A stretch of DNA of 64,000 bases from Takakia lepidozioides (lineage: Eukaryota > Plantae > Bryophyta), in contig CM060733.1 of assembly GCA_030704615.1 (NCBI GenBank), positions 28,520,001 to 28,584,000 of the forward strand. The letters are read 5' to 3'. Position 1 is the stretch's first letter, and each line of letters begins with the position of its first letter. Of the stretch, positions 8,787 to 60,900 are shown piece after piece. Below the pieces are notes generated by a model, which searched no databases, had not been told where the DNA came from, and worked only from the letters and a program-made list of their open reading frames with translations. The position numbers and the translations under genes were made by a program.

Positions 8787-11134
8787 CTAATCTGCCAGCC
8801 CAAGCATAAATGACAGATTTGGATCGGTTCTGATGATGCTTTTTGCAGCACGCTCTGCTACCTCCACATTGCCATGCATTCTGCAGGCACCAAGCACGGC
8901 CATCCACACCCCAGCATCTGGTTTGGTATGCATTTTGTTAATTATATGCTCGGCATAATCAAATTGCCCTGCACGCCCAAGGAGGTCCACCATACAGCCA
9001 AAATGCTCTACTGTGGGAGTCAGGCCATACTTCTGACTCATGGAATCAAAGTAGTGGCAACCTTCATCCACTAGACCAACATGGCTACATGCCGAGAGAA
9101 CAGAGATAAACGTGACACCATCTGGATTCAATTGCTCCCATTGCATATTTTCGAATAGCTGCAGGGCCTCCCTTCCGTACCCATGCTGAGAGTATCCTGC
9201 AAGCATGGCATTCCATGAGACTACATCTCGTTTGTTGATATTGTCAAAGACTTCACGTGCATCCTTCATGCTCCCACATTTAGCATACATGTCAACAAGG
9301 GCAGTCTCCAAATTTATGTGGGACACAATTCCAGAGTTGAGGATGTCAGCATGGACCTCTGTGCCCTCCTCCAGAGCTCCTAGGCTGGCACACGCATTGA
9401 GTACGCAAGTGAACGTGACCTTGTTGGGTATCACACCTTCCTGTTGCATCTGCTCATACATCTCTAAAGCCACCCAACCACCCCCATGCTGAGTATACCC
9501 TGAGATCATGACGTTCCATGAGACCACATTTCGTTTGGCCATGTTGTCGAACACTTGACGTGCATCTGTCATGCTCCCACCCTTTGCATACATGTCAACC
9601 AGGGCGGTCTCCAGATTAATATATGACCCAATTCCAGCCTTGATAATGTCAGCATGGACTTCCTTGCCCTTTTCAAGGGCACCTATGGCAGCGCATGCAC
9701 TCAGAACGGAAATGAATGTGACCCTGTTGGGAATCACCCCTTCCTGTTGCATTTGCTCATACATCTCAAAAGCTTCCCAACCACACCCATGCTGAGCATA
9801 TCCTGCAATCATGGCACTCCATGAGATCACATCTCGTTTAGTCATGTTATCAAACACTAGATGCGCATCCTTCATGCTCCCACATTTGGCATACATGTCG
9901 ACAAGGGTATTCTCCAAAGTAATATATGATGCAATTCCAGCTTTCACAATATCAGCATGCACCTCTTTGCCCTTTTCCAGGGCTCCTAGGTTGGCACACG
10001 CGCTGAGAATGCAAATGAACGTGACCCTGTCAGGCATCAACCCTTTGGATTGCATTTCCTCATAGATGTTGAAAGCATTCATAGCACCCCCATGTTGAGC
10101 ATATCCTGTGATCATGGCGTTCCATGAGACCACATCCCGTTTAGTCATATTGTCGAATACTTGACGTGCATCATTCATGTTCCCACATTTGGCATACATG
10201 AGAATTAGGGCAGTCTCCAATTTAATATATGATGTTATCCCAGCTTTGATTATGTCGGCATGGACCTCTTTGCCCCTCTCCAGGGCTCCTAAGTTCGCAC
10301 ACGCATGGAGAACACAAAGGAACGTGACCCTGTCAGGTGTCACCCCTTCCTGTTGCATTTGCCTGTAGATCTTCAAAGCCTCCTCAGCATCCCCCTGCTT
10401 GGCATATCCTGCCATCAGTATGGTCCACGTATACAAAGTTCGTTGAGGGATTTTCTCAAAAACTTGGCGTGCATCCAATATACTCCCGCATTTAGCATAC
10501 ATGTTAACAAGTGTGTTGAGTAGATGAATATTTGGCTCAAAGCCACTTTGGATAATGTGGGCATGCACCTGTTTTCCCTCTGCTAGATCTTTCCTGTTGA
10601 TGCATTCCTGCAAGAGACTGACATAAGTATTCAAGTCTGCCCAAATGCCTTGTTGGTTCAAAATGTGCAGCGCCTGTTTCATTTGTCCAGCCTTATATGT
10701 TGTCCTCAAACACTCAGAAGTGCCAGAAGAGTCCTTGTTTACTCCCTTTGTTGATCCTCTTTCAAAAGTCGTCAGGCTGGCAGATGTGCTAACCCATCTG
10801 CCAGTCTGAGGTCCAGCAAACAATTTGGCCTGATTCAACCTTACCTTCCTGCATAATCCAGAACACTAAGTTACACAACTTACATTCTTCTGATATATTC
10901 CAAAGCTCCTAGCTACATAAAAAAAAGATCTCTTTGTGAGGATAGGCTTCTTGCTACATATTAATAGAATCAGAAAGCTCACATGCTCACAAACTTTGAG
11001 AAGCAGCTGCAACATGTGTTTGAATTGATTATCAAACAATACCTGTTGTATTCTTGGCCCAGAGCTCTCTGGTGTACAATGACATGAGAACCATCACCAC
11101 ATTGTGAACCACATTGTGCACCACCTTGTATCAT
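8787..11134 (-). CDS. PLS-class pentatricopeptide repeat protein (about 17 PPR motifs plus partial E1, no intact E2 or DYW)
   Basis: Main exon 10848-8787 encodes (L1-S1-P1)x4-L1-S1-P2-L2-S2-E1 with 101-aa periodicity (LVDMYAKCGS, DVVSWNAM, VTFISVLSACSH, EHFGCMVDLLGRAG, WMAVLGACRMHGN). A phase-compatible upstream exon 11134-11043 starts with ATG. Further 5' exons are possible. Confidence 0.93.
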
Positions 11135-13128: not shown

Positions 13129-14135
13129 ATGGCCGACACAAACAATGTGGAGATGGAGACTGCATCGCAGAACTCGGGAAGAGGTCGTGGGAGGGGTGCA
13201 AGGGGAGGAAGAGGGGGAAGAGGAGGAAATAATGCTCGTATGAGACACGGTAATTGGGAGCACAGCGAGGTACTCGCGCTCATCAAGTGCAAACATCTGG
13301 AATACACACGAAGGAACAGGTGGATCCTCGGCCTGCTATTCAACGATGGGATAAGATTGCGGAGGAAGTTCAGATTATTACCAAAGCCAGAATGGAGCGT
13401 AATGGCAAAATGTGCAAGGACAAATGGAATGGCTTAAACTCGGATTACAAGAAAATATCCGATTATCACAAGGGAACAGGCCACCATACATCGTACTGGG
13501 ATATGGTTACTGCAGAGCGGGACAAATCTCATCTCCCTAGGCAGTTCAACATGGAGTATTACCATGCGATTGAAGCGTTTCAAGGGGAACGTATCATAAA
13601 TGCTCCAGTTCATGTCCGTGATGTCCATGCAGATGGAGACGGAAATTATGTGGCACCACAGACCGAAGCATGTGATGAAGAAGATCAAGATTCGGTCCCG
13701 ACACCCATAAGCGATGATCATGTGCCTGCACCTCAATTTGCTGATACTCCCAACACTCTACCAACGACTCCAATGTGTGGCAGTATAGGTGTTAAACGGA
13801 AGAGAACAAGCGTATTTTCGCTTGTCATTGAATCAAGTGATAAAAACAGCAAGGTGTTGGTTGATGCAATGGAGCGAATCAACGCCACCCAGCTCGATAT
13901 TGAAGATTGACGCGGCAAGGCACAGGCACAGACATCCAAAGACCACCTATTGTACATGAAAGCAAGAGACAAGAAATTTCGTAGGACCAGCAAAACCATG
14001 GTTCAAGTATTGTCTAATCTAAGCATCGCTACGTGTCATGCATTTATCCAAGATAGAGCTCTCATGCCGGCACAGTTCAATCTCAATGATGCTTCATCTG
14101 ACGAAGAGGTTCTAGCACATGATCCCGTCCTTTGA
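13129..14135 (+). pseudogene. Harbinger Myb/SANT (trihelix-like) DNA-binding protein, frameshifted
   Basis: NWEHSEVLALIKCK, then a frameshift at ~13300, then RWDKIAEEV...RNGKMCKDKWNGLNSDYKKI...SYWDM...LPRQF. Premature TGA at 13908-13910, and the frame continues to 14135. RGG-rich N-terminus. Confidence 0.85.
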
Positions 14136-23291: not shown

Positions 23292-23792
23292 CGTTAAAAG
23301 CAGGTGGTGGAATATACCTGGCGCAATCTGATTAGGCATGATTTATCCCATATCGATTGCCCAGATTCAGATGCCCGTAGTGGATATAAACGGGGGCTAG
23401 CTTCAAAGGGAAGGCGGGCGGGTCGCTGGGAGGTTGCATGTACCTGGGTAGATGCTGCCATCCGGGGTGCATAGTGCATAATTGGCCATCCCTGCCGGTT
23501 ATGCCTGCCGAATCGGCAAGTACACCCTGGGTGGCCGATTTGGCCAAATAAATTGGCTTGTGGAAAGGGCCTAATATGCCTTACCTGATTTTAACGTGAA
23601 CTCAGCTATCAAGGCACTACCTAATCATGCCTCCATTCCACTCGCCTTCCTCCATTCTAGAACATTCGCTCCCTCCATAACCTTAGTCAGCCATACTAGC
23701 CAAGTGGGCGCATGGAGCACATGCAATAGCCCTGTGGGGCTGCATGCAACTAGCCACCCTCATTCACACAAGGTGCTAGACGGCATGTTCCT

Positions 23793-24064
23793 AACTTCAT
23801 TTTCATCGGACAATCTTTTGGTAACAGACATGGCTTTGGACACTATACTCTCTAAGTCAGGTTTATCCAGCAAGGTCAAGACTTGTGGGTCCAGATTCAT
23901 ATCCTTAATAATCTCTTCTACTCTCTTATGCCAGGGCTTAGCCTGTTTGACAGGGCGGTCCTGTTTCCAGGATATAGAGTTGATTAACTTAGGATATCTG
24001 GTGTTGGACATATGTTGCAGCTGAACCCACCATCTGACTTGAATTTATCTCGTCGGGAGCTTAA
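23793..24064 (-). mobile_element. Fragment of the LINE family at 54169-58302
   Basis: Encodes NTRYPKLINSISWKQDRPVKQAK..DPQVLTLLDK, homologous to ~57475-57750. Confidence 0.95.
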
Positions 24065-24145: not shown

Positions 24146-24260
24146 AGAGGGCAACAAAGAAAAGAAAAGAAGGTGGGGGGGGGGGGGGGGGGGTGACTAG
24201 TAGCTGCTCAGTCCCCCCCCCCTCCCCCACATTTTTTTTTTTCCCTTTGTTGCCCCCTCT
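24146..24260. repeat. Imperfect palindrome with a G19 run and a C run
   Basis: agagggcaacaaag..gt(G)19-tgactagtagctgctcagt-(C-rich)ac..ctttgttgccccctct. Confidence 0.75.
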
Positions 24261-24264
24261 CTTG

Positions 24265-25030
24265 GGGAAACAAAAGGGACAAATCCTACCTCTGTCAGGG
24301 GCTGACGTTGGTAGTAAGACTTACCTTCACATATAGAATTAATCCGGGTTTTCCAGATATCCTCTAGAAATCCCTTCACACAATCATCAATATGTTGTGT
24401 GTGATTTGCCCAAAAACTAGGCCTCAGAAGGGGCTGGGCTTTTGACTCAGCCTCGAGACTTTCAAAGTTAGTAAACAGAGGCACATGCACAATTCTCTTG
24501 ATAGATTTGAAGAGAGCATCTCTTTGGTGATAGAACCCCGGACAGTGTATCAGAAAATGAATAATGTCTTCAAGTTGCCCACACAACGGGCAATTGCACT
24601 CTCCCTTTCCTCTCTGCTTCTGTTTGCTTATCAAAGGTAGGTTTCCTGCCCCGAGTTTAAATTTTAGTCTAGTGCCGAGAGTGGGTAGACCCTAGAGGTC
24701 ATCAAAGATGTCCTCCCCATGTCGTGCAGACTATAAACAAGTTCAGGGAAGTTTTTTGCGTAACTTCATTTTCATCGGACAATTTTCTAGTAACAAACAT
24801 GGTTTTGGACACTACACTCTCTAAGTCAGGTTTATCCAACAAGGTCAAGACTTGCGGGTCCAGATTCAGATCCTTGAGAATCTCTTCTACTCTCTTCTGC
24901 CAGGGCTTAGCCTATTTGACAAGCCGGTCCTGTTTCCAAGATATAGAGTCGATTAACTTAGGATATCTTGTATTGGACATTTGCTGCAGCTGACCCACCA
25001 GACCTTAAACTCATCTCGTCGGGAGCTTAA
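24265..25030 (-). mobile_element. 3' fragment of the same LINE family (CCHC zinc-finger region)
   Basis: Encodes KQKQRGKGECNCPLCGQLEDIIHFLIHC...KSYYQRQPLTEVG, homologous to ~57475-58240. Confidence 0.95.
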
Positions 25031-38816: not shown

Positions 38817-41800
38817 ATGGGGATGTGGGTGCCTGTGCTATTGGCACTTCTGGTTGGGGCATCTGTGTGGAGGGATGCTTATGCGTGCACTGCTGGCCAA
38901 TGTGAGGTCAGCGTCTTCACTTGTGAATTTGATTCACTTCAGAACATTATGAAATGCACCTGAGCGACAAATCATCTAGGATGTACTAGGTGACTATTCT
39001 GGGATCAACCTGGATGCACTAAGCCTATGACAGAATTCTGGGTTGCATAAGGATATGGTGGCAAAATACTCTGCCCTATATCTTTTGTTCTGAATTCCTT
39101 GTATGCAAGATAAGGTCAGTTCAACACTACTGTTGCTGCTCCACAATGTCTGACATTCCCAGTGGTGTCTCTGGGGCACACTCTGCTATCTTACTGCTAT
39201 CTTATGGTATCTCTGTTGATGTTCCTGAAACAGGTTTCAAATGTGTGCAATGTGGACACCGACTGTGCTACAGGCCTATCCTGCAGTTCCTGTGCTGCAG
39301 CGAGTTACAGATCATCAATTTGCACACGTGATGTGGCCACCCCCGTCTCTTCCTTTCCTAAGGTTCATGTTCTCAACGATAGTTACATGTTATTGTGCAA
39401 ACAGGGAGGAGAGTGTACTCATAAGAGGCAGTTTGCGGCAGCCTTGTGGCGATAGACCTCTTGCCCAGTTTGGGCGGAACAAAAGGGAACAGATACTACC
39501 TTTGTGAGGAGCTCACTCCAGTATTGTGACTTACCACGACTTACTACTTTGAGCTTTCGCGGAGGTTATAAAGTACCATTTCATTTCATTTCGTCGTAAA
39601 GACAATTAGTTTAGGTTTCCAGATATCCTCCAGAAGGCCCGTCACACAAGTATCAACTTGCTGTGTTCGAGCTGCCCAGCAATTAGACCCCAACAGGGCC
39701 AAGGCTTTGGTCTCAGCCTCAAGATTTTCAACAGGGAGGAGTTGTACTCATAAAACTTTGTTTGCCGTAAAAGGGACCAGAAATTACCTTTGTGAGGGGC
39801 TCACTCCCGTATTATGACTTACCTTGATACAAACAATTAGTTCGGGCTTTCCAGATATCCTCTAGGAAGCCCTTCACAGAAGCATCAATTTGCTATGTGT
39901 GAGCAGCGCAAAAGATAGATCCCAACAGGGTCAGGGCTTTAGGTTCAGCCTCAAGATTTCGGAAGTGGGTGAACAGAGGTGCCAAGACAATGATTGTCCT
40001 GAAGAGGGTCACTCTCCAGTGAGAACAACAGGGAGAAGAAACAGACAGATAGGATGGGGGTTGGGTTTTTGGGAGAGAAGGTAGACAGAGTATTGAGATT
40101 ATTGCTGGAGCAAGTCTGAAAATGTGTGAATTTTGCAGAATACATCCCTGCCTTTCAACAAGTATGCGTGGGTAACCACCCACAATTCCTATTCCATACT
40201 TGGTGAATCATCAGCTACAGGATCGCCGTACCTCCTTTCTCCTAGGAACCAGGAAGACAATGTCACCGCTCAACTCAATGTAAGCATTTGTTCCTATGGT
40301 CCAGTATTGTACTTCTCATTCTTGACAAAAGAAGAGTGAATTTGGAGGGTTACCTATGGTGTTTTGTTGAGCCAAGGTTAGAGCTAACGTGTTTTGGCCA
40401 AAGGGTGCAGAATGGAGTGAGGGGGTTGATGCTGGACATGTATGACTTCCTAGGGGATGTATGGCTTTGTCACTCCATAGGAGGAGTCTGCTACAATTAT
40501 ACTGCATTTGTGAGTTCCATCGGTGACTTTTGAATGTTTGAGCCATTAGAGAAGAAACTGTTTTCTTGTAATGTATTGTGCTGCACTTCAGGTGCACATA
40601 TAACTCAAGGATTCAGATATACAACCATGAAATAAGATGAAGACAAACCAATCCATGAGGTTCAGTAGCTATCGCTTGTGGAGTTTCGTATTATGGTTAG
40701 GAAAAGCCGAGCAGAAATTTGCTCATCAGAGGATGAGAACAATGAATCCAAAGGAATTTGCTCATCCACAGGTCTTAATATTTATTTCCTGTGTCTCTGG
40801 GGACTTGGGCCCTCTCTGAAATCCGTATGTTCTTGTGCAACAGCAACCAGTTAGTGGCACGTTGACGGAGATTGAGAAATTTCTGGCAGCGAATCCAAAG
40901 GAAATCATTACTATTTTTATTGAGGACTATGTTCACGCAACCAATGGTCTTACCAAAGTGTTCAAAGCTGCTGGCCTGCTGAAGTATTGGTTCCCAGTGA
41001 GTAACATGCCCAAGAGTGGGGGCGATTGGCCTACGCTCGATGATATGATCCAGAGCAATCAGCGTTTGCTGGTTTTCACTTCCATCAAGTCCAAGGAAGC
41101 CAGTGAGGGAATTGCTTACGAATGGAACTACTTGGTTGAGAATCAGTGTAAGTATGCCGAACTTACTAGGTCAGTGATTATGAATGAACCACTCGGTTTT
41201 GCGTGGCGCACAACAGAGAGAGAAACAGGGAGGCCAAACTTTTCAGTTGCCACCTTCGAACCTAATTGTGAAAGACTGAGATGGAAGCTGGTTTTCAGGT
41301 TGGGAAATTAATGAAACATACACTGTGTGTGACTTGCCTTCAAGGGTACCACTGTTTGCGGAAAGGTTATTTTGTTTGTGAAGCTTTTCTGGATTATGCA
41401 GAGCTATTCAAGGTCCAAAATAAACAGCTAGAGAAGGAGAAAATATTTTTCTGCATCAACATGTTTTGGCAAATGGTGTTGCAGATGGTACTTCGGGCCA
41501 GAAAGCTGGGTCTTGCCCAAACCGAGGAGAATCTGCTTCTATGAATGACAAAAGCAGGTCACTGGTCCTGGAAAACTACTTCCCAGATGACCCTAATGTG
41601 ACACAGGCATGTGCAGACAACTCCAACAATCTCTACGATATGCTGAATGTATGTTACACAGCGTCAGGCAACCGGTGGTCCAACTTTCTGGCCGTTGACT
41701 TCTACAAGGTACACCTCCTTTCGATAGAACCATGAAGGTAGGGTAGGGCTTGTCCTGTAGATTTCATCATTGGACCTGAGCTGACATCTGGGCTGGACTA

Positions 41801-44121: not shown

Positions 44122-47100
44122 CTATGAAGCCACATTTGTCAGGTTCATATTTGCATAGATTACTTTCCCCTCGAGAGCTGCATATGCATTCGCTATCATA
44201 CCTCCCAGCTCACGGGATGGTGGAAGGAGCACTCTGGATCGGAACACTGGAATATGAAGTACCACACTCGGTGTCCGCGCATTCAGATCTGGAATAGAAA
44301 CCTTAGGTGCTCTGAGTGTTTCTTTCTGAATGTTTTTTATGCGCTCTTGAGAACACACATTCTCTTCTGGCTTTTGTGGAAAAGTTAAAGGGGTTATAGG
44401 CACAGTTTCTCCTTGTGCAGATTCTGATGATGATCTGGCCATCTCAGCTACAAGAGTTGATTCATGGCTCTGAGTTTCTTGGACTCGCAGAATGCCTTCA
44501 TTCTGGACCTTGTCTGGTGGGCAGTCTGCAGGTTTGTCGCCGGATTCCTTGAGGTAGTGAGACATGTTGAAATTGGTGATTGCATTGGCTCCCCGAGATT
44601 TGACTGCAGCTCTATCGTATGCTGTAGCTGCCTCCTCTTGTGTATCTGTAGACACTCCATGATATCTAATAAGAGGAAGAAGATTTGCAGTAACATTGTC
44701 AATTGCAGCTGATAGCAGATCACAATACGCACCGTAAGTGCCGAGATAGAGGTGTTTAGATCCTGAGCTTTGGCCGATGCGAGCCTGCCACCGCTGGTGG
44801 TGCCTGCAATTTTCCAAAGGGAAAACATGTCTGTACATAGTTGCTTCTTAAAGAGTAGGCATAGCTCCACTTTTACGTTTTTGTGACCAGGGGCTTGAGG
44901 ATTGGAATTACTGGAACCAGCCTACCTTCAAAACAAAATGCAACGGTGAGAATGCAAACCTTGTGACTCCACGATATTTTGACTGGCCACGGGAAAATCC
45001 AGGACTCCTGTCATCAAGTCAGGAGTAGTTTAAACAGTATTATTAGCAACAATCATGGAAGCTGTCTTTGCATGCCCACTGTATTTCTTGTTTTTTAACC
45101 TTCATCTATCTTTCCTCTCATCTGCCTGTTTGTATGAGAAATAGATGGAAGGTTTAGGAAGCAAACCTTTGAATGAACAAGATGTACTCTTCTTTCGAGA
45201 AATCATGCATGGCTTTGATTTGTTCCCCATACTCGCTGATCTGCTCTCACATTAGAACGTTAGTAGAATTAGTAGTCCGTGTACTAAGACCCGGGTTTTG
45301 AAAGTCTCTTCTGACTGTGCACAGACATAGACTGAGTGTTTAGTACTCAATCTGTGTCTCTCAGGTGAGGTGTGACCATTTATGGATTTGATTTCTGGGG
45401 TAAACTTGTTCATGAGAGGGTAATTTGCATCCTTCAGATAATTGGGAAGGCATAATCGACACCTTTACACTACTGAAGGGCAGGCATTCTCACCCCTCCT
45501 TACTCTCCTCTGCGTTTGTGGGCCACATACTGAGGGCGATACAAGTCTTTGAGATATCTCTCCCAAGCATCATTTAGCACTGTAGGAATTTGCTCCAGTC
45601 AGAGAGCTCTACCTGTGATTGCGACCTTGGTTCTCTTGCGATAGTGTCCAAGCAGACTACCTCATCAGAGATTCTGAGCTGATGAATCTCTCAACTTGAA
45701 TTCATGAAATTGACTGAAGTTTGCAATTTCAACTTGAGATCTCGAAATTACCGGAAAGTTGAAGAGTATGTCAGGACCCCAGTATTTAAGAGCTGCCAAG
45801 TCGCGCGCTTGTGCAGCTTGCTCTTCGTGCTGGTACGTGCCTGTATGGGTTGGTCAGTTGTCAGTTGTAGAAGTTATTGCATCAGGAGCTTACTTTCTGG
45901 CTTCAACCTTCTTAGAAAGAAGTGCAAAGTTGGTGAGTGGAGAAAACTTCATGGTGCTTCAGTATTGTTAAGATCTGATGGTGCTTGTAGTTTATCGCTT
46001 CAGAACCAAGGATAAAGGTCTCCACCCTGTAGGAATTCAACTACATAAGTTCCTTCTTGAGAACCTGAATTCTCGTAAACATATGGAAACTGGGAATGTA
46101 GAGGAACATCCACACAGAGCATACCAAGGTAGACTATTTTGGCATGAAAGAGTGGACATCCGTAAAGTTCCGAGCGTACACATTATGCAGGGCAAGACAA
46201 AGTACAAGTTAGATTCAACATAAGACATAACAAAACAGGAAAGGATTTCTGCCCAAAACAGCAGTAAGCAATCCCACGTACTGTAACTTTAGCAGCCCAA
46301 CATGTTTTTTTATAGCACAAGCGATTAGGACATTTGCAGTAATAAAAGCAAGGATGCATTAAAATCTGAAAACTGAAGACTTGCCATAATCATTGTTGGA
46401 AACTTTCTTCTCAAATGACTCCATTTGAATGTCAGATTTACTAATAGATCCTATAGCAGAAGAAAGTTCACGAAGGAGCTAGTAAGATTCAACCTGACCA
46501 CCAAGAGATGTAGCTATGGCTCCGTGCTCACCTTGCTTGCCCTTCTTTGAGAGGCCTGTTTTGTCACAGCTGTTGTCCCACAGATATGCTTCAAACCGTC
46601 CAGTGCAACGATGTCTGCTGCCAAAGTAGGGAAGAATTTGATCGTAAGATTGCATTGTGAAAAACAGACCATGTTGGTGTTCGATGCATGCCATAGGCTG
46701 TACTTCTTATATGGTCAGTATGGTGCTCCAACAAAAGAAACTTCCTCTCTCTTCTCTTTCTCAGGAGAAGTCAATTAGTATGTAGATTCTCTCATTTACT
46801 GTCAGGGCTTCCTATGGATGTGATCGTTTCTCTTCTTTCTTAAACTTCTTACCTTATGTCCAGTTATTCTATAGCTCATTACAAAATAAAATGTACTAAT
46901 GGGGTGCCTTAAAGAGTCAAGGCACAGGATAAGTCATTGTATGTCAGTATACCTTGTGACACCATGATATCGGGAGATTTGATTCACTGCAGATACAGAA
47001 ACTTTTTGTATAACTGGTAGACGTCCATCTTTCTCTTGGATACCACTCACTACTTCCGCTTTCACACACAAGAACTCTTCAATAGGATCTGTCGTAGTAA

Positions 47101-49757
47101 CTGGCATTCCAGTACTGGTTTGCTGGACCCAACTGAGGGTGTTACCAACTAGTCCATAATTTTGCCGACTTGGTTCAGACCTTGCTCCCTTTGAATTTGC
47201 AGTTTTAACCCTTTGTGGTCTCTTTCTCACCCTTCCCCCTCGCACTTCAGATACCTGGGGGGTTACTGGTGATGAATGAACATCCCGGCCACTGGTCAAA
47301 TTTTCGATACTTTGAGGTGAGGCTTGCAATTTTGAAGTCAAAGAGCCACTCACAAAAGATTCTCCAAGAGATATAGCACCTGCCATATTGGACTTTGCAG
47401 TGTTACAGTCCTGAGGAAGGCCTTTGGCGTCTGGGAGATCTGTGACTGATTTGGGCACATTAAACTGACCCAGGATATTGTGCACAGTTGGGCTCAATCC
47501 TACAAAGAGGGATCTACTCACACAATTGCCCTCAATGGGACTGGCAGCTACCTTCATTATTGTCTCAGCACTACCAACTTCTGGAGGATACCCTACATCA
47601 GCATTTTTAGTAGAAGAGTATGGAGCTGCATTGATAGCTGTAGCCACAAGTACAGGATTGATCTCAGATTCACTGCCTCTGGCCATGTTCTTGGTAGCCA
47701 CGCATTCGGTTCGTGACATTGGTAAATCATTGAGGAAAACTCTGAAAGTGTCTTCTTGCTGTTCTATTGCTGAGGGTCGCTGGGATGAGGAAAGTTCATA
47801 ATTCAAATGATCTGCTTCAGCAAGAGACTCCTTCATTGCGTTTGTTGAGGTTGTCGCATAATCATAGGTATTTCTGGAATATGCTGCACTAAGCTGAGAG
47901 GAAGACAGGGGTTCAAGGTGAGGTAACTCAATCTCATCAGAAATTTCATCAACTTCCCATTTCATGTATCCTTCACAGGCAGATTTGGTTTCTAGTACTG
48001 CACACCAGCGCATGACTGGCAATGAGGTATCATTTCCACCTACAATCTCGTCCAAGTCTTCTGAAAATCCGCTGGCGGTACTTCTCTCAAATATATTATC
48101 CTTGTCAGAGAGGCCTTTATCGCCATCATTTGGTACTTCCTGCTGGGTGGTCTGAGTCATACAAATATCTTGTCTAACATTGGGCTGTCGCTCTGCAATG
48201 GGTTGTGGAAAATTTTCGTCAGAGCTGGCAGTGGTTACAGTTTCTCCTGTGAGCTTTATATTCTCAAACCTACTCTGCTGTGTATATTCATGCTTCTCCA
48301 TAATATGAGAAAGCACTTTTGGAGAGAGATTGCAAGCTGAGTTGTGATCATTGCTGTCTAATAGGGACGTCTGCACCTCAAGGGTACCTGTCTTTCCTGG
48401 GATGATACAGTCAGCTCCAAACCCTTCAGAGGACTTGAACATATATTCATCTTCCCCACCTTCCACATAGTGACCAGAAGGAATAATAGTACAATGCTGC
48501 CCAGGTATGGAGTTCTGTGTCTCAACCATCTCTTTCTGTCCAGTTGCCAAAATATCACGGGTATGAAGCAAACCAGGCTTCTCAGCTGAAGCTGTTGCAC
48601 TACTAGATAGTATTTGCTCCAAGGTCTTAGGAGGTTTCAGTTTCTGCTGCCTGAGTGGCAGGGTGACAGAATGTCCAACTAGTGCCAGTTCTGTTGCAGA
48701 AAACAACAGTTGCTCCTGCCCAGAAATTGTAGTGTTCAGAGAGGGTTCCCATCTATCTGTGTGATGATAGTTCAGACTTCCAGGCTGGTCTGCATGGCCA
48801 GAATCTGACCCTGATCCTCGCTCATTGCACTCATGGTTGAACAAACATTCACCCCTATGTATTCCACTCCTAGAGTCAAACTCACCGTCTTTGAAACTAC
48901 TTGGAGACTCCTCACCCTCCTCACTGAATTTCACATCCATATCAATGTCCAAATACCTCCAGTGCTCACCAAGGTGAAAAGCACTCCTGCCCTTGTCATT
49001 GGGTGCTCTATTGCAGACCAAAGCAAGTCGAGAGTTGGCAGTTGCCACAGTTTCCGTCTGAGCACCCTTGAATGTTTTTTCTTGTCCATGGCCTACAGCA
49101 TCTTGGTCATATCCCTGACTGGCTGCTATAGCCACCATACCCATACCAGCATTCATCATCCACTTCCCCTTGCGCTTCTTCCTGGGTGGGCTATCAGTCG
49201 TTACCCAGTCAATGGGATCCGTTGTGGCAGGTCTATACCAGTCAACATATCCATACCAGTTTCCTTCAGGAAGAGAGGAGAAGGGAGTTCCTCCAAATTT
49301 CCAGGACTCGTCATTCAAAAGTTTCATGAAAGGTGTGGGGGAGCCGCTACTTTTCGCAGAGTTTACTTCTCCAATCAAAGGTGGGTAGTCGTCACTGCTG
49401 AAAGCAATTAGTTCTTGGCTGTCGCAGGCCATTGAGCTGTGAAGTCCGGCACCATTAATATACGTATGTGCATCTGAGAATGTCTCTAATTCGAGAATAT
49501 CGGGCAATTTCCCATTCAAGTCAACGAAGGGAAGATTGATTTCATATCTGTCGGATGGCTGATCTCTGAAGACAGCATTCTGGGGTGGGTTTTCACCCGG
49601 GCCATCCGCTGAGACTTGTGGAATATTCGCTGCCTGTGTGCAGTAGAGTTCGTCAGTACCGTTGACACTCGGGTTGGTAGTATACGTCAGAGAGTTCAGG
49701 AGATCCTGGAGGTTGAAATCGTCATCTGCATCCGTCGAGTGCCAATTTTGTAATAGT
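44122..49757 (-). CDS. AP2-subfamily transcription factor with two AP2 domains (ANT/AIL/WRI-like), divergent, with a long N-terminal region
   Basis: Exons: large exon ending at 46953 (frame open to ~49757, start codon unresolved), 46614-46532, micro-exon 46133-46125, 45840-45752, 45240-45167, 45007-44960, 44803-44733 and 44645-~44122 (3' end uncertain). Spliced protein reads [93 protein letters not shown]. Confidence 0.92.
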
Positions 49758-50154
49758 TAGCAGCAAAGGCAAATGGTAACAGTCATTAACGAAAAAACCT
49801 CAAGCTCCTACATATCTGCTGAAGTTCTGGTCTGCTGGACAGCTAATTGGATTGCTTCACGTTATGAGGGTCTGGCGTTCATGGTACACTCTTGATTAGA
49901 GTACGGCCGTTGGATCCCAGCAGAGACAGAAGCCCATGTTGCCATTACTGGAAGATTCGTCAGCTTTATGAGGGGATTATGCGCATACATTGTAAGACTA
50001 CAGACAATACTCAATAGCATCATTCGAAGGAATTTGGGAATGCAACTGAGCAGGGGGTAGACAATAGTGAGTGTGAGGCTGCTGTTAATCACATGGCATC
50101 TGCCCCAGGCCTTTTAAACATCTGTCTCCCTCTCCCTCTCTCTCCTGTTTTTCT

Positions 50155-50192: not shown

Positions 50193-50787
50193 TCTCTCCT
50201 ATATTTTTCGCTCGTCGACACTAATTTACGAAACTCAGCCTGCTTACAATTTTTGAACAGCTCCGGTAGAGTTAAGGTTCTGGCCCCCCCTTTCCTCTAC
50301 CTCAAATCTACTCTGGTTACCCTTGAAAGTAGCCTCCATGTCTTTATCTGCATAATTTCTATCTGATGTGGACAATGAAGCTCTCCCAAAAACCTTGGAA
50401 AACAGAATTTCTGCTAAACTCAGTCTAATGCATTTCATACACTCCACCCACCTCCTTGTTTGCATTGAGCAAGAAACAAGCAACGGGCATCGCAGCTAGA
50501 GAGGCCAGTGGCAGGCGCCAGCAAGGAGGTTGTCACCAAGTCTACCTGGTTATCAAATCGTACTGCCGATGTGATGGTGGCCCATGTTGGAGGTACAATG
50601 AGAGAACTACTAGGCCGAGGACAACAGTCCATGGCTTCCATCTTCATCAGGCTTGAAAACAAAGAGAAACAAAAGTAACCCAAACTCTAGGTGAGTATTT
50701 TTGCTGCTAGATTCACAGGATAACTGATCCAATAATGCTTATCACAATCTCTCTGTCTGTCTGTCTCTTCTCTCTTTCGTAGGAATG

Positions 50788-50825
50788 GCCACAAGGCTAC
50801 GGCAAACAACGTTTTATGAGTACAA
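50788..50825 (+). mobile_element. ~38-bp terminal stub of the LINE family with 19-bp TSD
   Basis: gccacaaggctacggcaaacaacgttttatgagtacaa, flanked by tctctctYtcgtaggaatg at 50769-50787 and 50826-50844. Confidence 0.9.
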
Positions 50826-51132
50826 TCTCTCTCTCGTAGGAATGCAGCAAGGGAGAGAGACAAGACAGACAGAGGAGCGGCACATTTTGAATTTGAAAGC
50901 GACATGTCTTCCATCGGACGTGGACTCATGAAGCCTGTTCAAACCTATGCATGAGATCCACGTGGCTGACCTTGGCCCATGTGTCGAGAGACATGACTAC
51001 TCGTACATACTTACGCCAAATCAGATGATGATCAGCTGGAAGAACAGTGTCGGACAGTGTGAATCATCGCTGTCGATGGAGTGATGTATGTACCCAGGGT
51101 GTTTTGCGGATGAAGAGATAAATCCAGACGGA

Positions 51133-51972: not shown

Positions 51973-54900
51973 ATGGCGGCAGTAGTGGCGCAAGGACAGG
52001 TCCAGGGTCAAGCGGGGAGGGCCGACATGGCGCCTGTCCTCCAGCAGCTGAACTTAGCATCCTTGCGTACGCGCACACAGGACCTGCATAATGCGATCTC
52101 GCGCATTTTGCATTCTTTCCACACGCAGTCCGCACTGAAGTGGTACTCTTGATTCTCTCTTTTGCGCCTCACCGGTGGTCTTTTTCTCTTCAGAATGCAA
52201 TTCAGGATATAACATGAAAGAATGAGGGTTTATGGGTTTATAATGATATGAATACTGGAGCCAGACCTTGGTGTGTTGCCCATATGGATCCATTCTAGCT
52301 GGCAGGATTTCCTTGTGGAAACTACAGTAAATGACACAAGGCACCCGGTTAGTGATGAGCCAATGGCTTGCTCTTGCCATTATTCAATGCATCGAGACTT
52401 AGGGGTTCTTGTATCAGGATTTAGGTGCAGCGGAACTAGAAACTAGTGCTGTTGTACTTTCACAGCACTGTTCTGAATTTCCATCTCATAGTTTTATCTT
52501 ATCTTGTCATTTATCTGTGTAAAGAGTGTGTGGTCAGATAGATTATGGGTTGTTACTGTATATTTATTGGCGATTCCTGGAATGGCTTCTCAGGAAACAA
52601 GTGTACTGGTGTGATCTGTGGATTTAAAGGCATGTGCTTGTATATGCTCATCCTTGCTGCCCTGTGGCTATCCTGTCTGTGAGGCTGAACAAATTTGATG
52701 GTTCAGGACTGAGGTCCTGGGGCAGTTTGCAATGGTGAATGTGGAGCTGCTCAACCTGGTGGAGGATATCAAACCAATCCTAAAAATGTTTGTGGTGTAT
52801 CCGAAGAATGTCAATGCAGAAAATGCTTCAAGTAAGTCTGCTTCAGCCCTCGTTTGATTGTTTATGGTGGTCAGGCTAATTTATGCGAAAGGGCAGGGCT
52901 TTAGGGCCCAGTGGGCGTATAGCAGGGCTTGAGAACAAGATGGTTGTTTTGATGTTGTAGTCATATTTGCTGTTAGTGTGGCAGTATTGCCAATAATGCT
53001 GTCGTCAAAGCTTTTGCCGGAGATGGAGGCAGAGGAGGCATCAATGAAGGAGCAAATCTTGTCAGGCATTTCCAACCTTCCCATTCACATGCAAAGTGAT
53101 AAGATCCAGGTACTTTGTTGTGTTTACTGTTAATATTAGTTCAGAACTAGTTTTAAGTCTTGGTTGTTGTCATCTGGTTTTCAACCCATCTTATGTTATA
53201 CTCTGATCTGATTTTCCTTTAGTAGCTTCTGTGGTTTGCTTGCACATGTGCTAGCTGCCTTTTAGGTAGATTGTTGATTTATGATCTGTTTCTATTTTAT
53301 CCGTTTCAGTCTGATTGCAAGGTGCTTAAATTTGAACTTGTGTACTTTCAAGCCAGAGTATTTTTTACAACTTAGTCCATTTTGTGGACAGCCATACTGG
53401 GGGTGCGTATTTAAGAAACAGCATCCACTTAATTTCTCCACATCTAGAAATACGTAACTTGGCCATGGGAAGATAAGGTTGATTTCTGATATGGGCTTTT
53501 CTTATGGCATGTACAGAAAATTTTGGTGTTTGGGAATATGTGATGGTTATTCTTTGAACTTTCTGAGAGTAATTTAAATACAGCATAAGTTTGGACATTG
53601 GATCTGATCAAAAATTTGACTTGGATATTGGATTTTGACCCTCCAGAGGCAAATTGAGCTAGTCCGGTCAGTATGTGATGCAGCTGAGAAAGTGGTGGCT
53701 GAGGCACGCAAGCATTATGGAATTAGCACTCGACAGGGTCCTGTGTCCCTCACCACCCTCGACAAAGGCCATGCAGCTCGCATTGCTGAGCAAGAGAAGC
53801 TCATTCGGGCTGCTGCTAACTATGGGGAAGGTGGGTGAGAGTTTCATTTCGCAATCATTGTGCTTCATTTTCCTTCTATTTGGGGGGGGAAAAGAGGAGA
53901 CAAGAGTATCGTAATTAGTATAGTCTGTCTTTCATTTGAAGATGCTTGGACCTATCATGGAGAGTGGTTTCCATAAAGTTGCATTGTGCTGTAGAGACTT
54001 TGACAGTTTATGCAGGTTGTTTTGGATCGTCCAATGCCAGGGCTTCGCATACCACCGGACCAGCAACAATCAGGCTCTGTTCTGCCTCCACACATGGCAT
54101 CTGCATTGGGTACATCAGGAACAGATGGGGGTGGGTCTTCCTTTTACTCTCTCTCTTTACTGTGGAGAGTTTGACAGTTTCTAATCGGTTTGATGGTCTG
54201 GATGAGGTTGAATCCAAACAGCCAGAAGGACAAGATGCCCCTAAGTGTACGGAACCTGAACGTCCTGAATCTGAAGGATTTGGTACTCTGAATGGTTTAC
54301 CAATCCTCAAGGTTTACACAAGACGAACAAATTCTATACACGGGGTAATTGTCCCCAAGCCGTCAGATGGACAATCTGTCCCTAAGTGTGCAGAGCCTGA
54401 ACGTCGTGTAACTGAAGGATTTGGTACTCTAAATGGTTTACCAATCCTCAAAGTCTACACAAGACGAGCAAAATCTATACACGGGGAAATTGTCCCCAAG
54501 CAGTCTGACGGACAATCTGCCCCTATGTGTGCGGAGCCTGTGCGTCGTGTAACTGAAAGATTTGGTACCCTGAATGGTTTACCAATTCTCAAAGTTTACA
54601 CAAGACGAGCAAAATCTACACATGGGGTAACTGTCCCCCCTTTGCAGAACGGTTGGCCGTCCAGGAGCAATCACAAGCTACCTAGACGACAAACAATTCA
54701 CACGCAAAGGGCTGGCTTGCGGCTGGCCACTTTCAACTTCTCAGGGTTGACCAACCAAAGGAAACAACTTGAAGTGGGACAAGTTCTTCGGACTAATGAT
54801 ATTCATATCTCTGCTGGGCAAGAAACATGGGAAACGTCGGATAAACTGGTTGGAGATGTCATTGGTTATAAATGGGCAGGTAAGATGTGTACTCTCAAGG

Positions 54901-57900
54901 CAGCCTCTGCCAAACGCGGTCAAAAAGGGGTCGGATTCTTTGTCCGTGATTTCTTGTTTGACAATTGTGAAATTATCAACAAGGGTTTGAGGTACGAGCA
55001 TAGTATCTGGCTAAAACTGAATTTGAAGGGCGGCATGAGTACAAAGGACCTCTTTGTTGGTTGTGTTTACATGCCCACAGAGGGGACCCTTAGTGCTGAC
55101 GCAGACAAGGCCTTCGAAGATGTAAAGCTGGACTGTGCTTCGTTTCTTGCCAAAGGTCAGGTGGTACTATTGGGGGACTTCAATGCCCGGGTGGGCAAAG
55201 GGATCCATCAGGATGATATCATTGGACCGTTTGGTGAGGACGAGCTGAATTCTAATGGCAGACGGTTAATTAACTGTCTAGAAGAGCTTCAGCTTTTGAC
55301 CTTGAATAACAACAAGAGGTGACCAAGTGCAGTGGACTCGTGAGAAACCCAAACTGGGGAACGTTCCATTGTGGACTATATCATAATGGACAAAATTTTG
55401 TTCCCCCAGTGTGCCAATATGACAGAACTGATTATGGTACCTCTGACCACTTCCTGGTTTGGACTGAGATCAAAAGGTGTTTTCCCACCGCCAAGAGATC
55501 TGTGAAACGTTCGATTCGGAAGTGGCGCATAGAAAAATTCCACAATGAGGAGGTCAAGGCTGAGTACGTCCAGGCCTTGCAAGAGGCTCTCCCTCATTTT
55601 GTCCAATCGCTCCAAGAACTTCAGTCACGCTCTGTTAATGCAAGAAATGAAGTCGAAAGAGCAGTGGACTCTTGGGAGAGTTTCGTTTCCTCCGTGGCTG
55701 ACAAGATCATTGGGAGGAAACTAATTGTCTGCGGTAGAGCAGTTAATTGGTGGACTACTGAGATTAAACTCAAGATAGCTGAGAGACGAGCCCTCTATAA
55801 AGAGTGCTGCAATTTGGAAACCAACAGAGAATTGTGGGCGAGGTACCACCAGCTCCGTAAAGATATCAATCAGCTTGTTAGGTCTCAGAAGAAATTATAC
55901 TGGGACAAGTTATACAGTGAAATAAACTCAAACCACCATGGTGGTAATGACAAGAAATTCTGGTTGGCCCTTCAACGTTTGTACAAACCGAAAAACGGTC
56001 AGCAAGTACAAGCGCTGAAGACTACTAAAGGTGCAGTGGTGACTTCATCGGTTGACATTGTCAAAACCTTGAAACTCACTACAGTATCCTTGGCAGAACT
56101 TCTAGGTCTAACAGTGAGGGGTCTTCTGCTGAATGGAGGGACACAGTTGGAAAAACTGTTCCTATGATTCAAAACAGCCCTGATGAACTGGAGTATATTT
56201 CAATGGCTTATAATGCTCCCATTAGTTCTTCTGAGATAGTGGAAGCAATTGAACATTTAAATGGATATAAAGCTGGTGGACCTGATGGTATTGTCAACGA
56301 GCTTATCAAGCACGGTGGCGATCCCATGATAGAGGCCCTAGTTCTCCTCTTTAACCTTATCTGGAAGACTGAAATGATCCCCTTTCGCTGGCGACAGGGG
56401 GTCATTGTCAATCTATACAAGAAGGGTGACAGAGAAGAACCGGGGAACTACCGTGGCATCACGCTCCTCAATGCTGTTGGCAAGACATTCTGCAGAGTTA
56501 TAAGTACTCGTCTCGAGGTTGATCTGGAGTCTAGAGGTTGTTTCCACGAAGGCCAAGCTGGCTTTCGGCGAAACAGGGGCTGTGTGGATCATATCTTCAC
56601 TCTAAGCCAGATTATCCAGGGAAGGAAAAAAGAAGGGAAACCCACTTATGTCTTTTTCCTGGATGTCAAAAAGGCTTATGACACAGTGTGGAGAGATGGC
56701 CTATGGTTCCGCCTCTGGTCTTGTGGGATCAAGGGAAAGATGTGGAGAGTTGTCCACAACTTGTATGCTCACACCAAAAGCTGTGTCACTGTTAACGGAC
56801 AGAAGTCCAACTTCTTTGACATAGACCAAGGTGTAGCTCAAGGATGTACTCTCTCCCGTCTCCTCTTCAATGTTTTCATCAATCAACTCCTCGAGGATGT
56901 GGAAAGTGAGGGATTTGGGTTAAGGGTGGGTGATACCACCATACCAGCCCTTATGTTTGCGGATGACTTCGCAGGCATAGGGGAGACTCCAACCAATCTC
57001 CAGGAGTTGATTGATTGCGCGAAGAGATACTTTGATCTTTGGGGGCTAGAGGCTAATGTCAGCAAATGTGCAGTGGTAGCATTCAACGACAGAGGAGAGG
57101 GAGGAAGTGATCTTAAGTGGCAGTGGGGTAGCCAAGAGATCCCGGTCCTCCCTTCCTACACTTACCTGGGCGTTGAGTTCTCCTCCAATTGTAATTGGGA
57201 TGCACATATCCGGAAAGTTGTTCAAACTGGCAAGGGCAAAGCTCTGGGGCTCACTAAATTTTTCCACTGCAGAGGGGTCAACTCTGAGGTCAAGAAAACC
57301 ATGCTTTGTCGCGTTATTAGACCTGCCTTGGAGTACGGATCTGCTATATGGGTTGATAACTCCAACCAGACTAAGTCTCTAGAATCCATTCAAGTGGGGG
57401 TGCTTAAGGAGTGTATGTCAGCATGCTCCAAAACAGCCAATGTGGCTGTTCGGGGTGAGTTTGGCATTCCGTCCTTAAGCTCCCGACGAGATGAATTCAA
57501 GGTCAGATGGTGGGGTCAGCTGCAACATATGCCCAACACCAGATATCCTAAGTTAATCGACTCTATATCTTGGAAACAGGACCGCCCTGTCAAACAGGCT
57601 AAGTCCTGGCAGAAGAGAGTAGAAGAGATCCTCAAGGACCTGGACCTGGATCCGCAAGTCTTGACCCTGCTGGATAAATCTGACTTAGAGGCTGTAGTGT
57701 CCTCAGCCATGTCTGTTGCCATGAGATTGTCTGATGAAAATGGAGTTCGGCAGAAAACTTCCCTGAACTTGTTTCCAGTCTGTGACGTGGGGGAGGACAT
57801 CTTGGATGACCTCAAGGGTCTACCCACTCTCGGCACTAGACTGAAATTTAAACTCAGGGCAGGAAGCCTACCTTTGAACAGCAAACAGAAGCAGAGAGGA

Positions 57901-60900
57901 AAGGGAGAGTGCAATTGCCCGTTGTGTGGGCAATCTGAAGACAGTATTCATTTTCTGATACACTGTCCGGGGTTCTCTCACCAAAGAGACGCTCTCTTCA
58001 AATCTATTAAGGGAATTGTGCCTGTACCCCTGTTTACCAACTTTGAAAGTCTCAAGGCTGAGCCAAAAGCCCAGGCCCTCCTGAGGCCTAGTTTTTGGGC
58101 AAATCACACACAGCAGATTGATGCTTGTGTGAAGGGATTTCTAGAGGATATCTGGAAAACCCGGATTAATTCTTTATATGGAGGTAAGTCTTACTACCAA
58201 CGTCAGCCCCTGACAGAGGTAGGTTCTGTCCCTTTTGTTCCCGCTCAAACTGGGCGCGGGGTCAATGGCCACAAGGCTACGGCAAACGTCTTATGAGTAC
58301 AATCTTTACTGTGGAGATGCTTGAACTTCTGTCCGTCTAGTTTCTTACAAACACGTCATTCTGTGGCTACTCCATTGGTCCAAAACACAGCAGTGGGCCT
58401 CTTCAATTCCCTAGATTAGAATTGACTCACTGACATCCTGATTTCTCTGTAAGTACTTTCTCCATCTTTAATTAAAACTGGCTTCTGCTTAACTTTGTCA
58501 ATGCTGATGAAATGTCTCCAAATTCAGCTTCCTATATCAGTGGAACCCACGACTGCTGGATTCTGGCAGCCACTCCATCAGTAGTCTCAGTAGCACGAAG
58601 TAAGAATTCTAGCCAGAGTTGGACTGATATGGTTTGTTTCATTCTCGTCAGGCCTGGGATTTCAAAGGGGGTCGGCATTGCCGCCCACTGGTCTGATGCG
58701 CCCTGCAGTGCCTCAACAGGTCTGTTTCTTCAACTTGCCTTCTTAAAGGAGGGAAGGGGGGGTGGGCGAGAGAGAGAAATAGAGAAATAGATAGATGCTT
58801 GATAAGGGGTGGGGCCTCAAACATAGGGCAGGGGAAGGAGTTGTAAGTTTGCTCTAGGGAGTTTCCCCTTTTCCTTGCCAAATGCCCAACTTCGAAAGAG
58901 AGATTATGTCAACAGGAGGCCAAGAGAAGGAGAGAGCACAGCAGCAGCAGTATAGAACTAGGCAAAAATGCAGAGACTTCTACTTTGAAAGCTGGTCAGG
59001 ATTGAGCTGGTTAAGGGATGTGGAGGGTTACCATCCTCAACATGACGGCTAACCTTTTGGTATCATGCCGTAGTTTCCAACGAATTAATGTGTCTTCAGA
59101 GGGAACTGGAGACTTTTCTTCATATCAGAAGTTGCTAAGTATATCAGATTTAGAGTGTTCAACAGTCACTCAATTTAAATCTGTGAACCCACTAAACACA
59201 GATCAGTAGCATGCAATCACCAACTCTAACAGTGCTTATCATTTCTCTGCATGCAAGGGAGGTTGCTTGTTAGCTGTCCTACCCTCTTCTGTGATTGCTT
59301 TCCAGGGGAAGTTTGCTTCTAAGTTACTTTCTCCAAAACACTATTCAGGTACAAACCCGATGTGTAGCTTCATCTCGCTTTGGTGTCAGTAGTTTATCAT
59401 CCATACGGACTGAGTAGGATTTGTGTGTGTGCACACAGCAGGCCAACGCATCCCAGCTTTTGGGTCGTTCAACCGTTACAAACCCGCTGCAAACCCTCAC
59501 GGGGGCTGGGACTCTCCCTGGAGTTGGGTCAGCTGCAACACCCATCCCGTTTGTGAATTCACCGAGGTCCAGCACTGGAAACTTCAATGTACCTTCCCCA
59601 CAACAACAACAACAACAACAGCAGCAACCACAACAACAACATTCCACACAGGCCGCCCTCTTGCAAAGACAAAAGCAGCAACTGCAGAAACAACAGTTGC
59701 AGGTGCAACTCCAGCAGACACAGCAGCTTCGACGGCCTGGGACCCCTCCTATCCCACAGGTGGGTTTGTGAAAACCTCTGACCAGACCATCAATAACATG
59801 TTCCGGCACGATAGCTTTTTTAGACCATGCTGGTTGGCTTTGTGGTTGCCAGTCTATAGAAAACACAGGAAATGCTGCTCAAACGTGAAAAAGCAAAGCC
59901 TGGCACAACCATATTCTTGAGCTTCTCAAGGGAACAAGTGGAACACGAGGACCACCTAAAGGACCTTCCCCAGCTTGGCAAAAGGCTGAAGTGTAATTAA
60001 GCGTCCTCTGTGTGGCAGATCCAAGCTGGGAAAATTGGAACCCAGATGTTCGCTTTGTGAGCTTTGCTGAAATAGCAGATATTTGTAATGTGGTTTCTTC
60101 TCTTGTGAATAAGAGGTCCTCTGAAATGCATTAACACTGATTAGTCGGAGAAGCTGAAGACACTGTTGAATGCTGTGCCCGTGCGGGGTCTGAGGTATTC
60201 AAAACTAGTTATGGTATTGAAGGCCAGTCCAATAACTTGTTAAAGCTACAGTACTGCAGCAAGCTCTCCGTAATAGCATTCTACTCTCCTCTCGTTTCCT
60301 GCTCTGTTCCAACCAGGCCTGGAGTCTTAAGTCCAGGGGAAGCGGAGTCTAATCAGTACATATTCTCTTATCTCCCTTCAAGGGTCCTCCTCCTGTATTT
60401 GGCTTATTGTCGGCTGTGTGGGTTAGTATTATGACAGTTTTGGCTGAGTTTCCTTACTCTGTTGGCCCAGAACAGCATGATGGGTTCTAATAGGGTGGAT
60501 GTGGGTCAGAGACTATGGCCTGAGAGCCAGTCATAGCCAATGTTTGCAAGGAATGATCAGTGGGTAGAAACTATCTGCGCTTTCTCTGTAGCCATGTTTC
60601 TCACTCAGTGGTCTTTGTTCTAACCAGACATTGGGCAGGATAGTGATGTTAGGATTTTGGCATCAACTGTCACTGATGATGGTCATTTCATATTATGGAC
60701 AGGGCCAGGTTGGATCCCAGCAACAAGGACAGGTGGCTCAGCAGCATTTGCTACAACATCAGCAAAAGCTACAGCAGGTTGTAGTTTCCCTAGTCCTACA
60801 CAGGGATGTCTTGTATCTTTGTAACTTCCATGGAAAGCAGCCAGAAGTGGCCAGCAGTTATAAGATGTGGGAAGTAGCTGACAAGATTGTTGGTGGAGTC

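Follow-up and report, generated by a model that had tools for sequence, protein, structure and literature searches.

A 64,000-nucleotide stretch from Takakia lepidozioides (Bryophyta; assembly GCA_030704615.1, contig CM060733.1, positions 28,520,001 to 28,584,000), referred to here in full as the window, carries copies of a long interspersed nuclear element (LINE) that is, probably, a high-copy, tail-less, RTE-X-type family of a land plant with a real, mechanism-based preference for TC-rich tracts as insertion sites. Family members were found by blastn of positions 54169-58302 against the window together with direct reading of the letters, and the family is represented in the window by seven fragments, one near-full-length copy (copy A) and six truncated ones. 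A first-pass annotation, made from the sequence alone, had described seven copies of one LINE encoding an apurinic/apyrimidinic-type endonuclease (APE), a reverse transcriptase (RT) and a zinc knuckle; blastn recovers the same number of fragments and all three coding features are present. The preference is seen most directly in the target site duplications (TSDs) that flank the copies, and the same junction recurs in public contigs of the organism.

Target Sites and the Preference for TC-rich Tracts

Copy A is inserted between two identical TSD copies, and the six truncated fragments lie elsewhere in the window. The features that define the target sites are:

54154..54168, + strand: 5' TSD of copy A, a perfect 15 bp tctttactgtggaga, preceded by ttttactctctc
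54169..58302, + strand: copy A, near-full-length LINE of 4134 bp
58303..58317, + strand: 3' TSD of copy A, immediately after gtacaa
50155..50192, + strand: copy B, a 38-nt 3' end with extreme 5' truncation
50788..50825, + strand: copy C, a 38-nt 3' end
39742..40026, - strand: copy F, 5'-truncated, of a diverged subfamily
39412..39729, - strand: copy E, 5'-truncated, head-to-tail behind F
23790..24064, - strand: copy G, element positions 3307-3582
24266..25030, - strand: copy H, element positions 3307-4074, with its 3' end lost at a 51-nt imperfect palindrome

The TSD of copy C (tctctctYtcgtaggaatg, 50769-50787 and 50826-50844) is 19 bp long with one mismatch, and that of copy B, which starts tctctcct, is degenerate and matches at 13 of 16 positions (50139-50154 and 50193-50208). 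Copies E and F have a 12-bp TSD, ctcctccctgtt, that occurs three times, at 39400-39411, at 39730-39741 and, with one mismatch, at 40027-40038 (cttctccctgtt). TSD lengths in the window range from 12 to 19 bp, and the duplication starts at TCT or CTC, always on the element sense strand. The variable TSD lengths, a fixed 3' end and variable 5' truncation, with five different 5' ends among the seven fragments, are the signs of target-primed reverse transcription (TPRT), and microhomology at the 5' joins is visible at the C and E junctions.

Target composition was determined on the element sense strand over the 20 nt centred on the TSD start, which corresponds to the bottom-strand nick position in TPRT. 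The pyrimidine content of the four independent sites is 0.85 (A), 0.95 (B), 0.90 (C) and 0.85 (E/F). With the LINE copies masked, only 0.93% of the strand-positions in the window reach 0.85, and the p value for all four sites doing so is about 7.6e-9, which rules out chance as the source of the TC association. The earlier statement that every readable TSD begins in a pyrimidine tract is therefore borne out at these sites, and more than 100 further 3' junctions in public contigs agree with it. The tracts themselves are short and imperfect, for example (CT)3-5 or ctgtctgtttcttctccc, and are not long microsatellites. The first-pass annotation had proposed a preference for CT microsatellites; the preference for TC tracts stands, whereas the word microsatellite overstates what the tracts are.

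One alternative is that copies insert at random and survive mainly in TC-rich, low-complexity, intronic or noncoding DNA, or that TC tracts are simply common nearby. The window holds about 140 pyrimidine-rich 20-mer tracts, counting both strands, and for Drosophila Waldo-A and Waldo-B a passive build-up next to CA repeats has been suggested (PMC3812793). A passive association, however, cannot give nucleotide-precise and strand-specific junctions; it also sits poorly with all four sites exceeding a value reached at so few positions, and with a GTACAA-TCT junction followed by CTCTCTC that is common to more than 100 other contigs. This explanation is considered very unlikely.

A second alternative places the origin of the TC run in the element, either as a (UC)n tail on its RNA or as a product of RT slippage at initiation. 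RTE elements with very short 3' untranslated regions (UTRs) that contain simple sequence repeats have been reported as microsatellite progenitors (PMC2887409), in metagenome contigs many relatives lie immediately upstream of long simple repeats, among them (CT)n with over 25 units, and the 3' TSD of copy C is a more perfect (TC)5 than its 5' counterpart. The single TSD mismatch of copy C is, however, within the ordinary decay of an old copy. Pyrimidine-rich letters are found both within the TSD and upstream of its 5' copy at all four sites, an arrangement that a 3' tail cannot produce, and in copies A, C, E and F gtacaa is followed at once by the TSD. These observations assign the TC run to the target and not to an element tail, and the insertions at these sites lie within a single type of simple repeat, flanked by TC-rich sequence at either end. 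The first-pass annotation had raised the case of a TC run present solely as an encoded 3' tail; the TC-rich 5' TSD copies and upstream flanks rule this out as the sole cause in the window. An origin of the run in the element is improbable overall, and a tail or slippage may add to repeat length.

Truncated Copies and Stacked Insertions

Copies E and F belong to a subfamily that is about 78% identical to copy A. Their truncation points and internal indels differ, and the middle TSD copy (39730-39741) lies between them and is common to both, with one further copy on each outer side; on these grounds E and F are read as two separate insertions at one site. A contig joint from 58305 to 58009 with CTCTCTC between is a further head-to-tail pair.

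Copies G and H give no TSD, the 3' ends of both having been lost. On the element sense strand both have a TC-rich 5' flank, which agrees with the earlier observation that the two fragments at 24-25 kb abut GA-rich runs; these runs are on the + strand. The two copies are 89% alike and share the same 5' breakpoint at element position 3307 (window position 57475), with TC-rich flanks that are unrelated to each other. A segmental duplication was considered and ruled out, as the likeness begins at the element boundary itself and does not extend into the flanks. The shared start may mark a hot spot of 5' truncation through microhomology with TC-rich TSDs, or it may mark a short subfamily. The element reads ..gtccttaagc.. 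at this breakpoint, and read contigs also have joints ending nearby, at 57472-57474. Between G and H, at window positions 24146-24258, lies the 51-nt imperfect palindrome (76% complementary), which features a G run of about 20 plus C and T runs and is flanked by inverted copies of an element motif, ..cccttttgtt... The palindrome resembles a foldback or repair scar, and may also be an assembly problem.

The 3' Terminus and Its Junctions in Public Contigs

The element ends in a fixed terminus that directly adjoins the target, with a small hairpin a short distance upstream:

58291..58302, + strand: fixed 3' terminus ttaTGAgtacaa, the stop codon plus a 6-nt 3' UTR, lacking poly(A)
58261..58283, + strand: small hairpin with a GGC-CACAAG-GCU core, 20-40 nt from the 3' end and overlapping coding sequence

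The open reading frame (ORF) of copy A stops at 58294-58296, and six bases further on, after gtacaa, the element meets its 15-bp TSD. The same arrangement, TGA followed by gtaca(a) (gtacact in E) immediately abutting the TSD, is found at all five readable 3' junctions, and poly(A) is absent. The absence of poly(A) and the near-absence of a 3' UTR had been recognised in the first-pass annotation.

Logan contigs of four public runs were aligned to positions 53800-58700; two of the runs (X1 and X2) derive from one sample of the organism itself. Contigs that leave the reference right after 58305, that is, after gtacaa and tct, number 112 in X1, 120 in X2 and 8 in X5, a run labelled 'plant metagenome'. 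The consensus of the flanks after 58305 is CTCTCTCTTT, beyond which agreement decays; the agreement of this loose-end consensus is just 0.38-0.65, and many copies have little beyond TCT. A subfamily with an AAC insertion, which reads GTACA-TTCTCTCTTTCT, is found in 139 and 135 contigs. The contigs widen the junction pattern from five cases to a few hundred. In X1 and X2 the unique flanks have a summed contig depth (not a copy number) of about 62, and the element itself goes from about 1.5e5 at the 5' end to 1.7e6 at the 3' end, a gradient as expected for a very abundant and mostly 5'-truncated LINE. The run of organism B (X6) gave only fragments of the element and none of its flanks, and hence no empty site in a relative.

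The terminal motif ATGAGTAC(A) is common to relatives of the element, including one (L002) whose stop codon is farther upstream. Because the motif is kept there apart from the stop codon, it probably acts as a signal in cis besides marking the end of a reading frame. Across the hosts of the relatives the DNA of the last 45 nt is conserved as a GGY-loop-RCY hairpin followed by ATGAGTAC(A), and the hairpin shows a few compensatory changes. The hairpin is tentatively regarded as a candidate RT-recognition element.

Coding Capacity of Copy A

Copy A features a single ORF that is now broken into three frames, at about 54171-55319, 55319-56164 and 56164-58293, which leaves the copy dead. Near these frame changes, contigs of other copies differ by small indels. 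The only long ORFs of copy A are these three collinear pieces, which carry the endonuclease and RT domains, and a separate ORF1 was not seen among them. The coding features are:

54214..54638, + strand: three tandem units of 141 bp (47 codons each), N-terminal in the coding region and ahead of the endonuclease
54726..55196, + strand: APE-type endonuclease domain (Pfam Exo_endo_phos, E 8e-5, profile positions 1-159 of 225)
56422..57177, + strand: RT domain (RVT_1, E 7.5e-32)
57910..57966, + strand: C-terminal zinc knuckle, C-x-C-x2-C-x7-H-x4-C, with Cys/His columns kept in relatives

The Pfam matches place an N-terminal APE-like endonuclease ahead of the RT in one ORF, the order that defines a LINE of this type, and homologues carry PF00078 along with PF03372 or PF14529. 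The endonuclease domain is interrupted by the first frame break, and its match scores 22.9 bits against a cutoff of 24.5. In a PDB search, the best solved-structure matches of the RT are the LINE-1 ORF2p and R2 RTs, which score alike, so that this comparison does not separate clades. The three 141-bp units are 87% alike and in frame; such repeats were not seen in the N-terminus of Ectocarpus RTEX-1 as printed in PMC12477816.

Several contigs in three runs join position 55487 to 57616, leaving out 2128 bp and carrying 5 filler letters at the joint. This suggests that an internally deleted form, with most of the RT missing and probably non-autonomous, has spread in its own right.

Relatives and the Repeats They Adjoin

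The 710-aa piece comprising the RT and the C-terminal region has 1167 homologues, and the named ones among them are Ectocarpus proteins. One of these (P0011) is 41% identical over 97% of the piece, and both it and P0072 are near-identical to the endonuclease-RT (EN-RT) protein of RTEX-1_Ec32 printed in supplement 2 of PMC12477816. A quick maximum-likelihood tree paired the plant element with a metagenomic relative (P0001/L002, 56% identity) and grouped it with Ectocarpus RTEX-1 and an animal-hosted lineage with an SH-like approximate likelihood ratio test (SH-aLRT) value of 89. The neighbours of P0010 carry SRCR domains. RTE-X is the most abundant LINE group of Ectocarpus (PMC12477816), where its families are curated as 'single EN-RT ORF' in the supplement; the plant element shows the RTE-X traits of a single EN-RT ORF, no separate ORF1 and no poly(A). 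A relationship of the element to the RTE-X group appears well supported by the best hits, and the earlier description of the family as RTE-X/RTE-like is in keeping with its closest named relatives being copies of the curated RTEX-1_Ec32.

Ectocarpus RTE-X families are annotated with '(C)n 3'', a 'C-rich' TSD and 'can be present in tandem' (PMC12477816 supplement 3). The repeats that follow the terminus in the plant element and its relatives are:

L003, L004 and Ectocarpus: (C)n
L001 and L083 (two copies of one family): (TTA)n
L005: (TTTA)n
L041 and the plant element: (TC)n

More distant relatives adjoin (CT)n, (AAT)n, (TACA)n or (TCAC)n. Judged from these contigs, adjoining a simple repeat is a habit of the wider group, and the kind of repeat appears to be labile. 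A search for TSDs in the relatives L001, L003, L004, L006, L009, L033, L039 and L083 found none.

The relative represented by L001 (5725-5801) and L083 (8730-8807; ENA ERZ25069326) has 42% protein identity to the plant element, and its two copies are 99% identical over 2 kb. They share the terminus ..GCTACGGCA..ATGAGTATA, which is followed by (TTA)4 in one and (TTA)5+ in the other before the flanks diverge. Upstream of the common 2 kb the two are unlike, so that elements of this family are mosaic.

Proposed Insertion Mechanism

In the preferred reading, a high-copy, single-ORF non-LTR retrotransposon with APE, RT and zinc knuckle would copy itself by TPRT. Its RNA would lack poly(A) and end six bases past the stop codon in a module made up of the small hairpin and ATGAGTACAA, which the RT is presumed to recognise. 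The nuclease would nick the bottom, purine-rich (GA) strand at about 5'-AGA^G-3', and the new copy would hence sit directly before TCT in a TC-rich tract on the element sense strand. The RT, held on the 3' module, would start at or beside the last A of GTACAA, the top strand would be cut 12-19 nt downstream to give the TSD, and 5' ends would be joined with microhomology. The TC tract would be duplicated or left intact on both sides, and because it survives there the site could be hit again, which would explain the head-to-tail pile-up of E and F and the stacked joints in the contigs.

The site could be chosen by the endonuclease, by pairing with a short UCU(C) read-through, or by both, and the weight is divided roughly evenly. 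A choice by the endonuclease agrees with the presence of TC-rich sequence to either side of the nick. A choice by pairing fits the common terminus with lineage-specific repeats and the stacking of copies behind gtacaa.

Pairing has also been considered as the only source of specificity, with unspecific nicks and an RT that is productive where a …GAGA-3' end pairs with UCUC read through from the flank of the parent copy. The ATGAGTAC(A) terminus is conserved while the repeats differ among the relatives listed above, adjoining (C)n, (TTA)n, (TTTA)n or TC, so that the kind of repeat is not set by the terminus as such. The junctions are precise, with a possible TCT overlap of at least 3 nt, and one stacked copy may have entered right behind the gtacaa of another, where the upstream sequence is not TC-rich. 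All four primary sites, however, are TC-rich upstream of the nick, as for a nuclease that reads both sides, although nicks that happened to fall within tracts would look the same. The endonucleases of the relatives have also diverged enough for differing specificities. Pairing alone is an unlikely basis for the preference, and the reading in which nuclease, read-through or both act within a mechanism-based choice of TC tracts is retained.

A precedent for parts of this mechanism is provided by R2 and other 'stringent' LINEs, which lack poly(A) and whose RT recognises a specific 3' structure and initiates precisely at a fixed 3' end. R2 RNA that carries downstream 28S sequence pairs with the target for precise initiation; the possible use of co-transcribed downstream target for pairing and the repeated use of one site are further points of likeness to the plant element. 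R2 differs from the plant element in having a restriction-like endonuclease and a single rDNA site, instead of an APE nuclease and dispersed sites numbering in the thousands. The target repeat may, rather than being fixed by the protein, be inherited through the RNA: read-through into the downstream repeat of the parent copy would pair with the nicked strand, and the lineage would keep its kind of landing site. This idea is speculative and more doubtful than probable. If true, it would explain how one terminus, ATGAGTAC(A), is shared by elements in animals, brown algae and the plant, yet is followed by different repeats, and it would also explain the stacking of copies behind their own ends.

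Several points weigh against a TC preference of the kind proposed here. The seven fragments amount to only four independent sites with readable TSDs, and one of these, that of copy B, is degenerate. No allelic or orthologous empty site was seen, and it is from the 5' flanks and TSDs that the TC tracts are judged to have been there beforehand. The evidence from reads comes as collapsed contigs that show only 3' flanks, and X1 and X2 are possibly the source sample of the window. The APE match of copy A falls under the Pfam gathering score, and a PDB sequence search with the APE piece returned no match. RTE-X membership is drawn from the best hit and from a tree that lacks labelled RTE, Proto2, Tx1 and L1 outgroups. 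The candidate hairpin shares its letters with conserved coding sequence, and the 3' region, with a fold z-score of about 0, folds no better than shuffled sequences.

Comparison with Known Systems

The closest described elements are RTEX-1_Ec32 and RTEX-2_Ec32 of Ectocarpus, together with the non-autonomous RTEX-N1/N2 (PMC12477816). Like the plant element, they feature a single EN-RT ORF with a C-terminal zinc knuckle, and the RT and C-terminal regions are 41% identical and end in a similar C-terminal peptide (…VNG..A..). Both lack poly(A), both have pyrimidine-rich TSDs (described as 'C-rich' in the alga) and both occur in tandem copies. They differ in length (4.1 kb in the plant, 5.5-5.9 kb in Ectocarpus), in the flank or target (TC/TCT versus (C)n) and in the host, a land plant versus a brown alga. 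The three N-terminal 141-bp repeats belong to the plant element and set it apart from Ectocarpus RTE-X. The habit of the algal RTE-X is on record only as a supplementary-table note (PMC12477816).

LINEs specific for (TC)n, named Kibi, were described from zebrafish and pufferfish, with Koshi specific for (TTC)n, both within the Tx1 group (Kojima and Fujiwara 2004, as cited in PMC3812793). Kibi and the plant element are both APE-type LINEs that enter TC repeats. Kibi belongs to another clade (Tx1, of the L1 superfamily) and to animal hosts, a separation from the plant element that is made by description only. Kibi is reported as strictly repeat-specific, whereas the plant family uses short and imperfect TC-rich tracts. 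The same paper credits the repeat specificity of Kibi, Waldo and similar elements mainly to the endonuclease (PMC3812793).

The RTE elements of Lepidoptera (PMC2887409) resemble the plant family in their many 3' partial copies and in a tight tie to simple repeats. In those elements the repeat is interpreted as belonging to the element and arising by slippage, whereas the TSDs of the plant family place the TC run in the target. The lepidopteran elements are RTE proper, and the plant element appears to be of the RTE-X type.

Literature searches found no report of a LINE with such a TC-tract habit in a land plant. A 2025 review of the localisation of plant transposable elements, to the extent that it was searched, names no repeat-targeting LINE and offers only a general 'landing pad' idea. 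TC-specific LINEs in fish and C-rich TSDs in algal RTE-X are known already, and the new part is the land-plant member. The suggestion in the first-pass annotation that the family may be undescribed thus holds in so far as these searches found no land-plant paper, and has to be narrowed with respect to the algal RTE-X elements and the (TC)n-specific Kibi of fish.

Genomic Context and Significance

The land-plant origin of the window, which had been proposed from the letters alone, agrees with its gene content, an intronless pentatricopeptide repeat (PPR) gene and a neutral invertase exon. A brown-algal host, to which the Ectocarpus matches had pointed, was rejected on the basis of these two genes. 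Neighbouring features in the window are:

2969-3868, + strand: exon of an alkaline/neutral invertase (GH100)
8790-10838, - strand: intronless 683-aa PPR gene, whose relatives are all from land plants, the closest (50-54%) from the lycophyte Diphasiastrum
13254-13907, + strand: ORF with a Myb/SANT-like DNA-binding domain, of a kind often tied to Harbinger transposons
46937-49519, - strand: 861-aa ORF lacking any Pfam match, immediately upstream of copies B and C

The 861-aa ORF may be part of another mobile element.

Descriptions of land-plant LINEs usually assign them to L1 or RTE and credit them with little choice of site. A very abundant family with a TC preference at the nucleotide level is a natural system in which to study how APE-type LINEs choose simple repeats, and the relatives, which share the same terminus and adjoin different repeats, offer a comparative handle on the contributions of nuclease and RNA to specificity. 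The finding has a practical bearing on annotation and on TC/GA microsatellite markers in the host plant. For the host genome itself, the TC preference would bias where insertions and TC repeats build up in genes.

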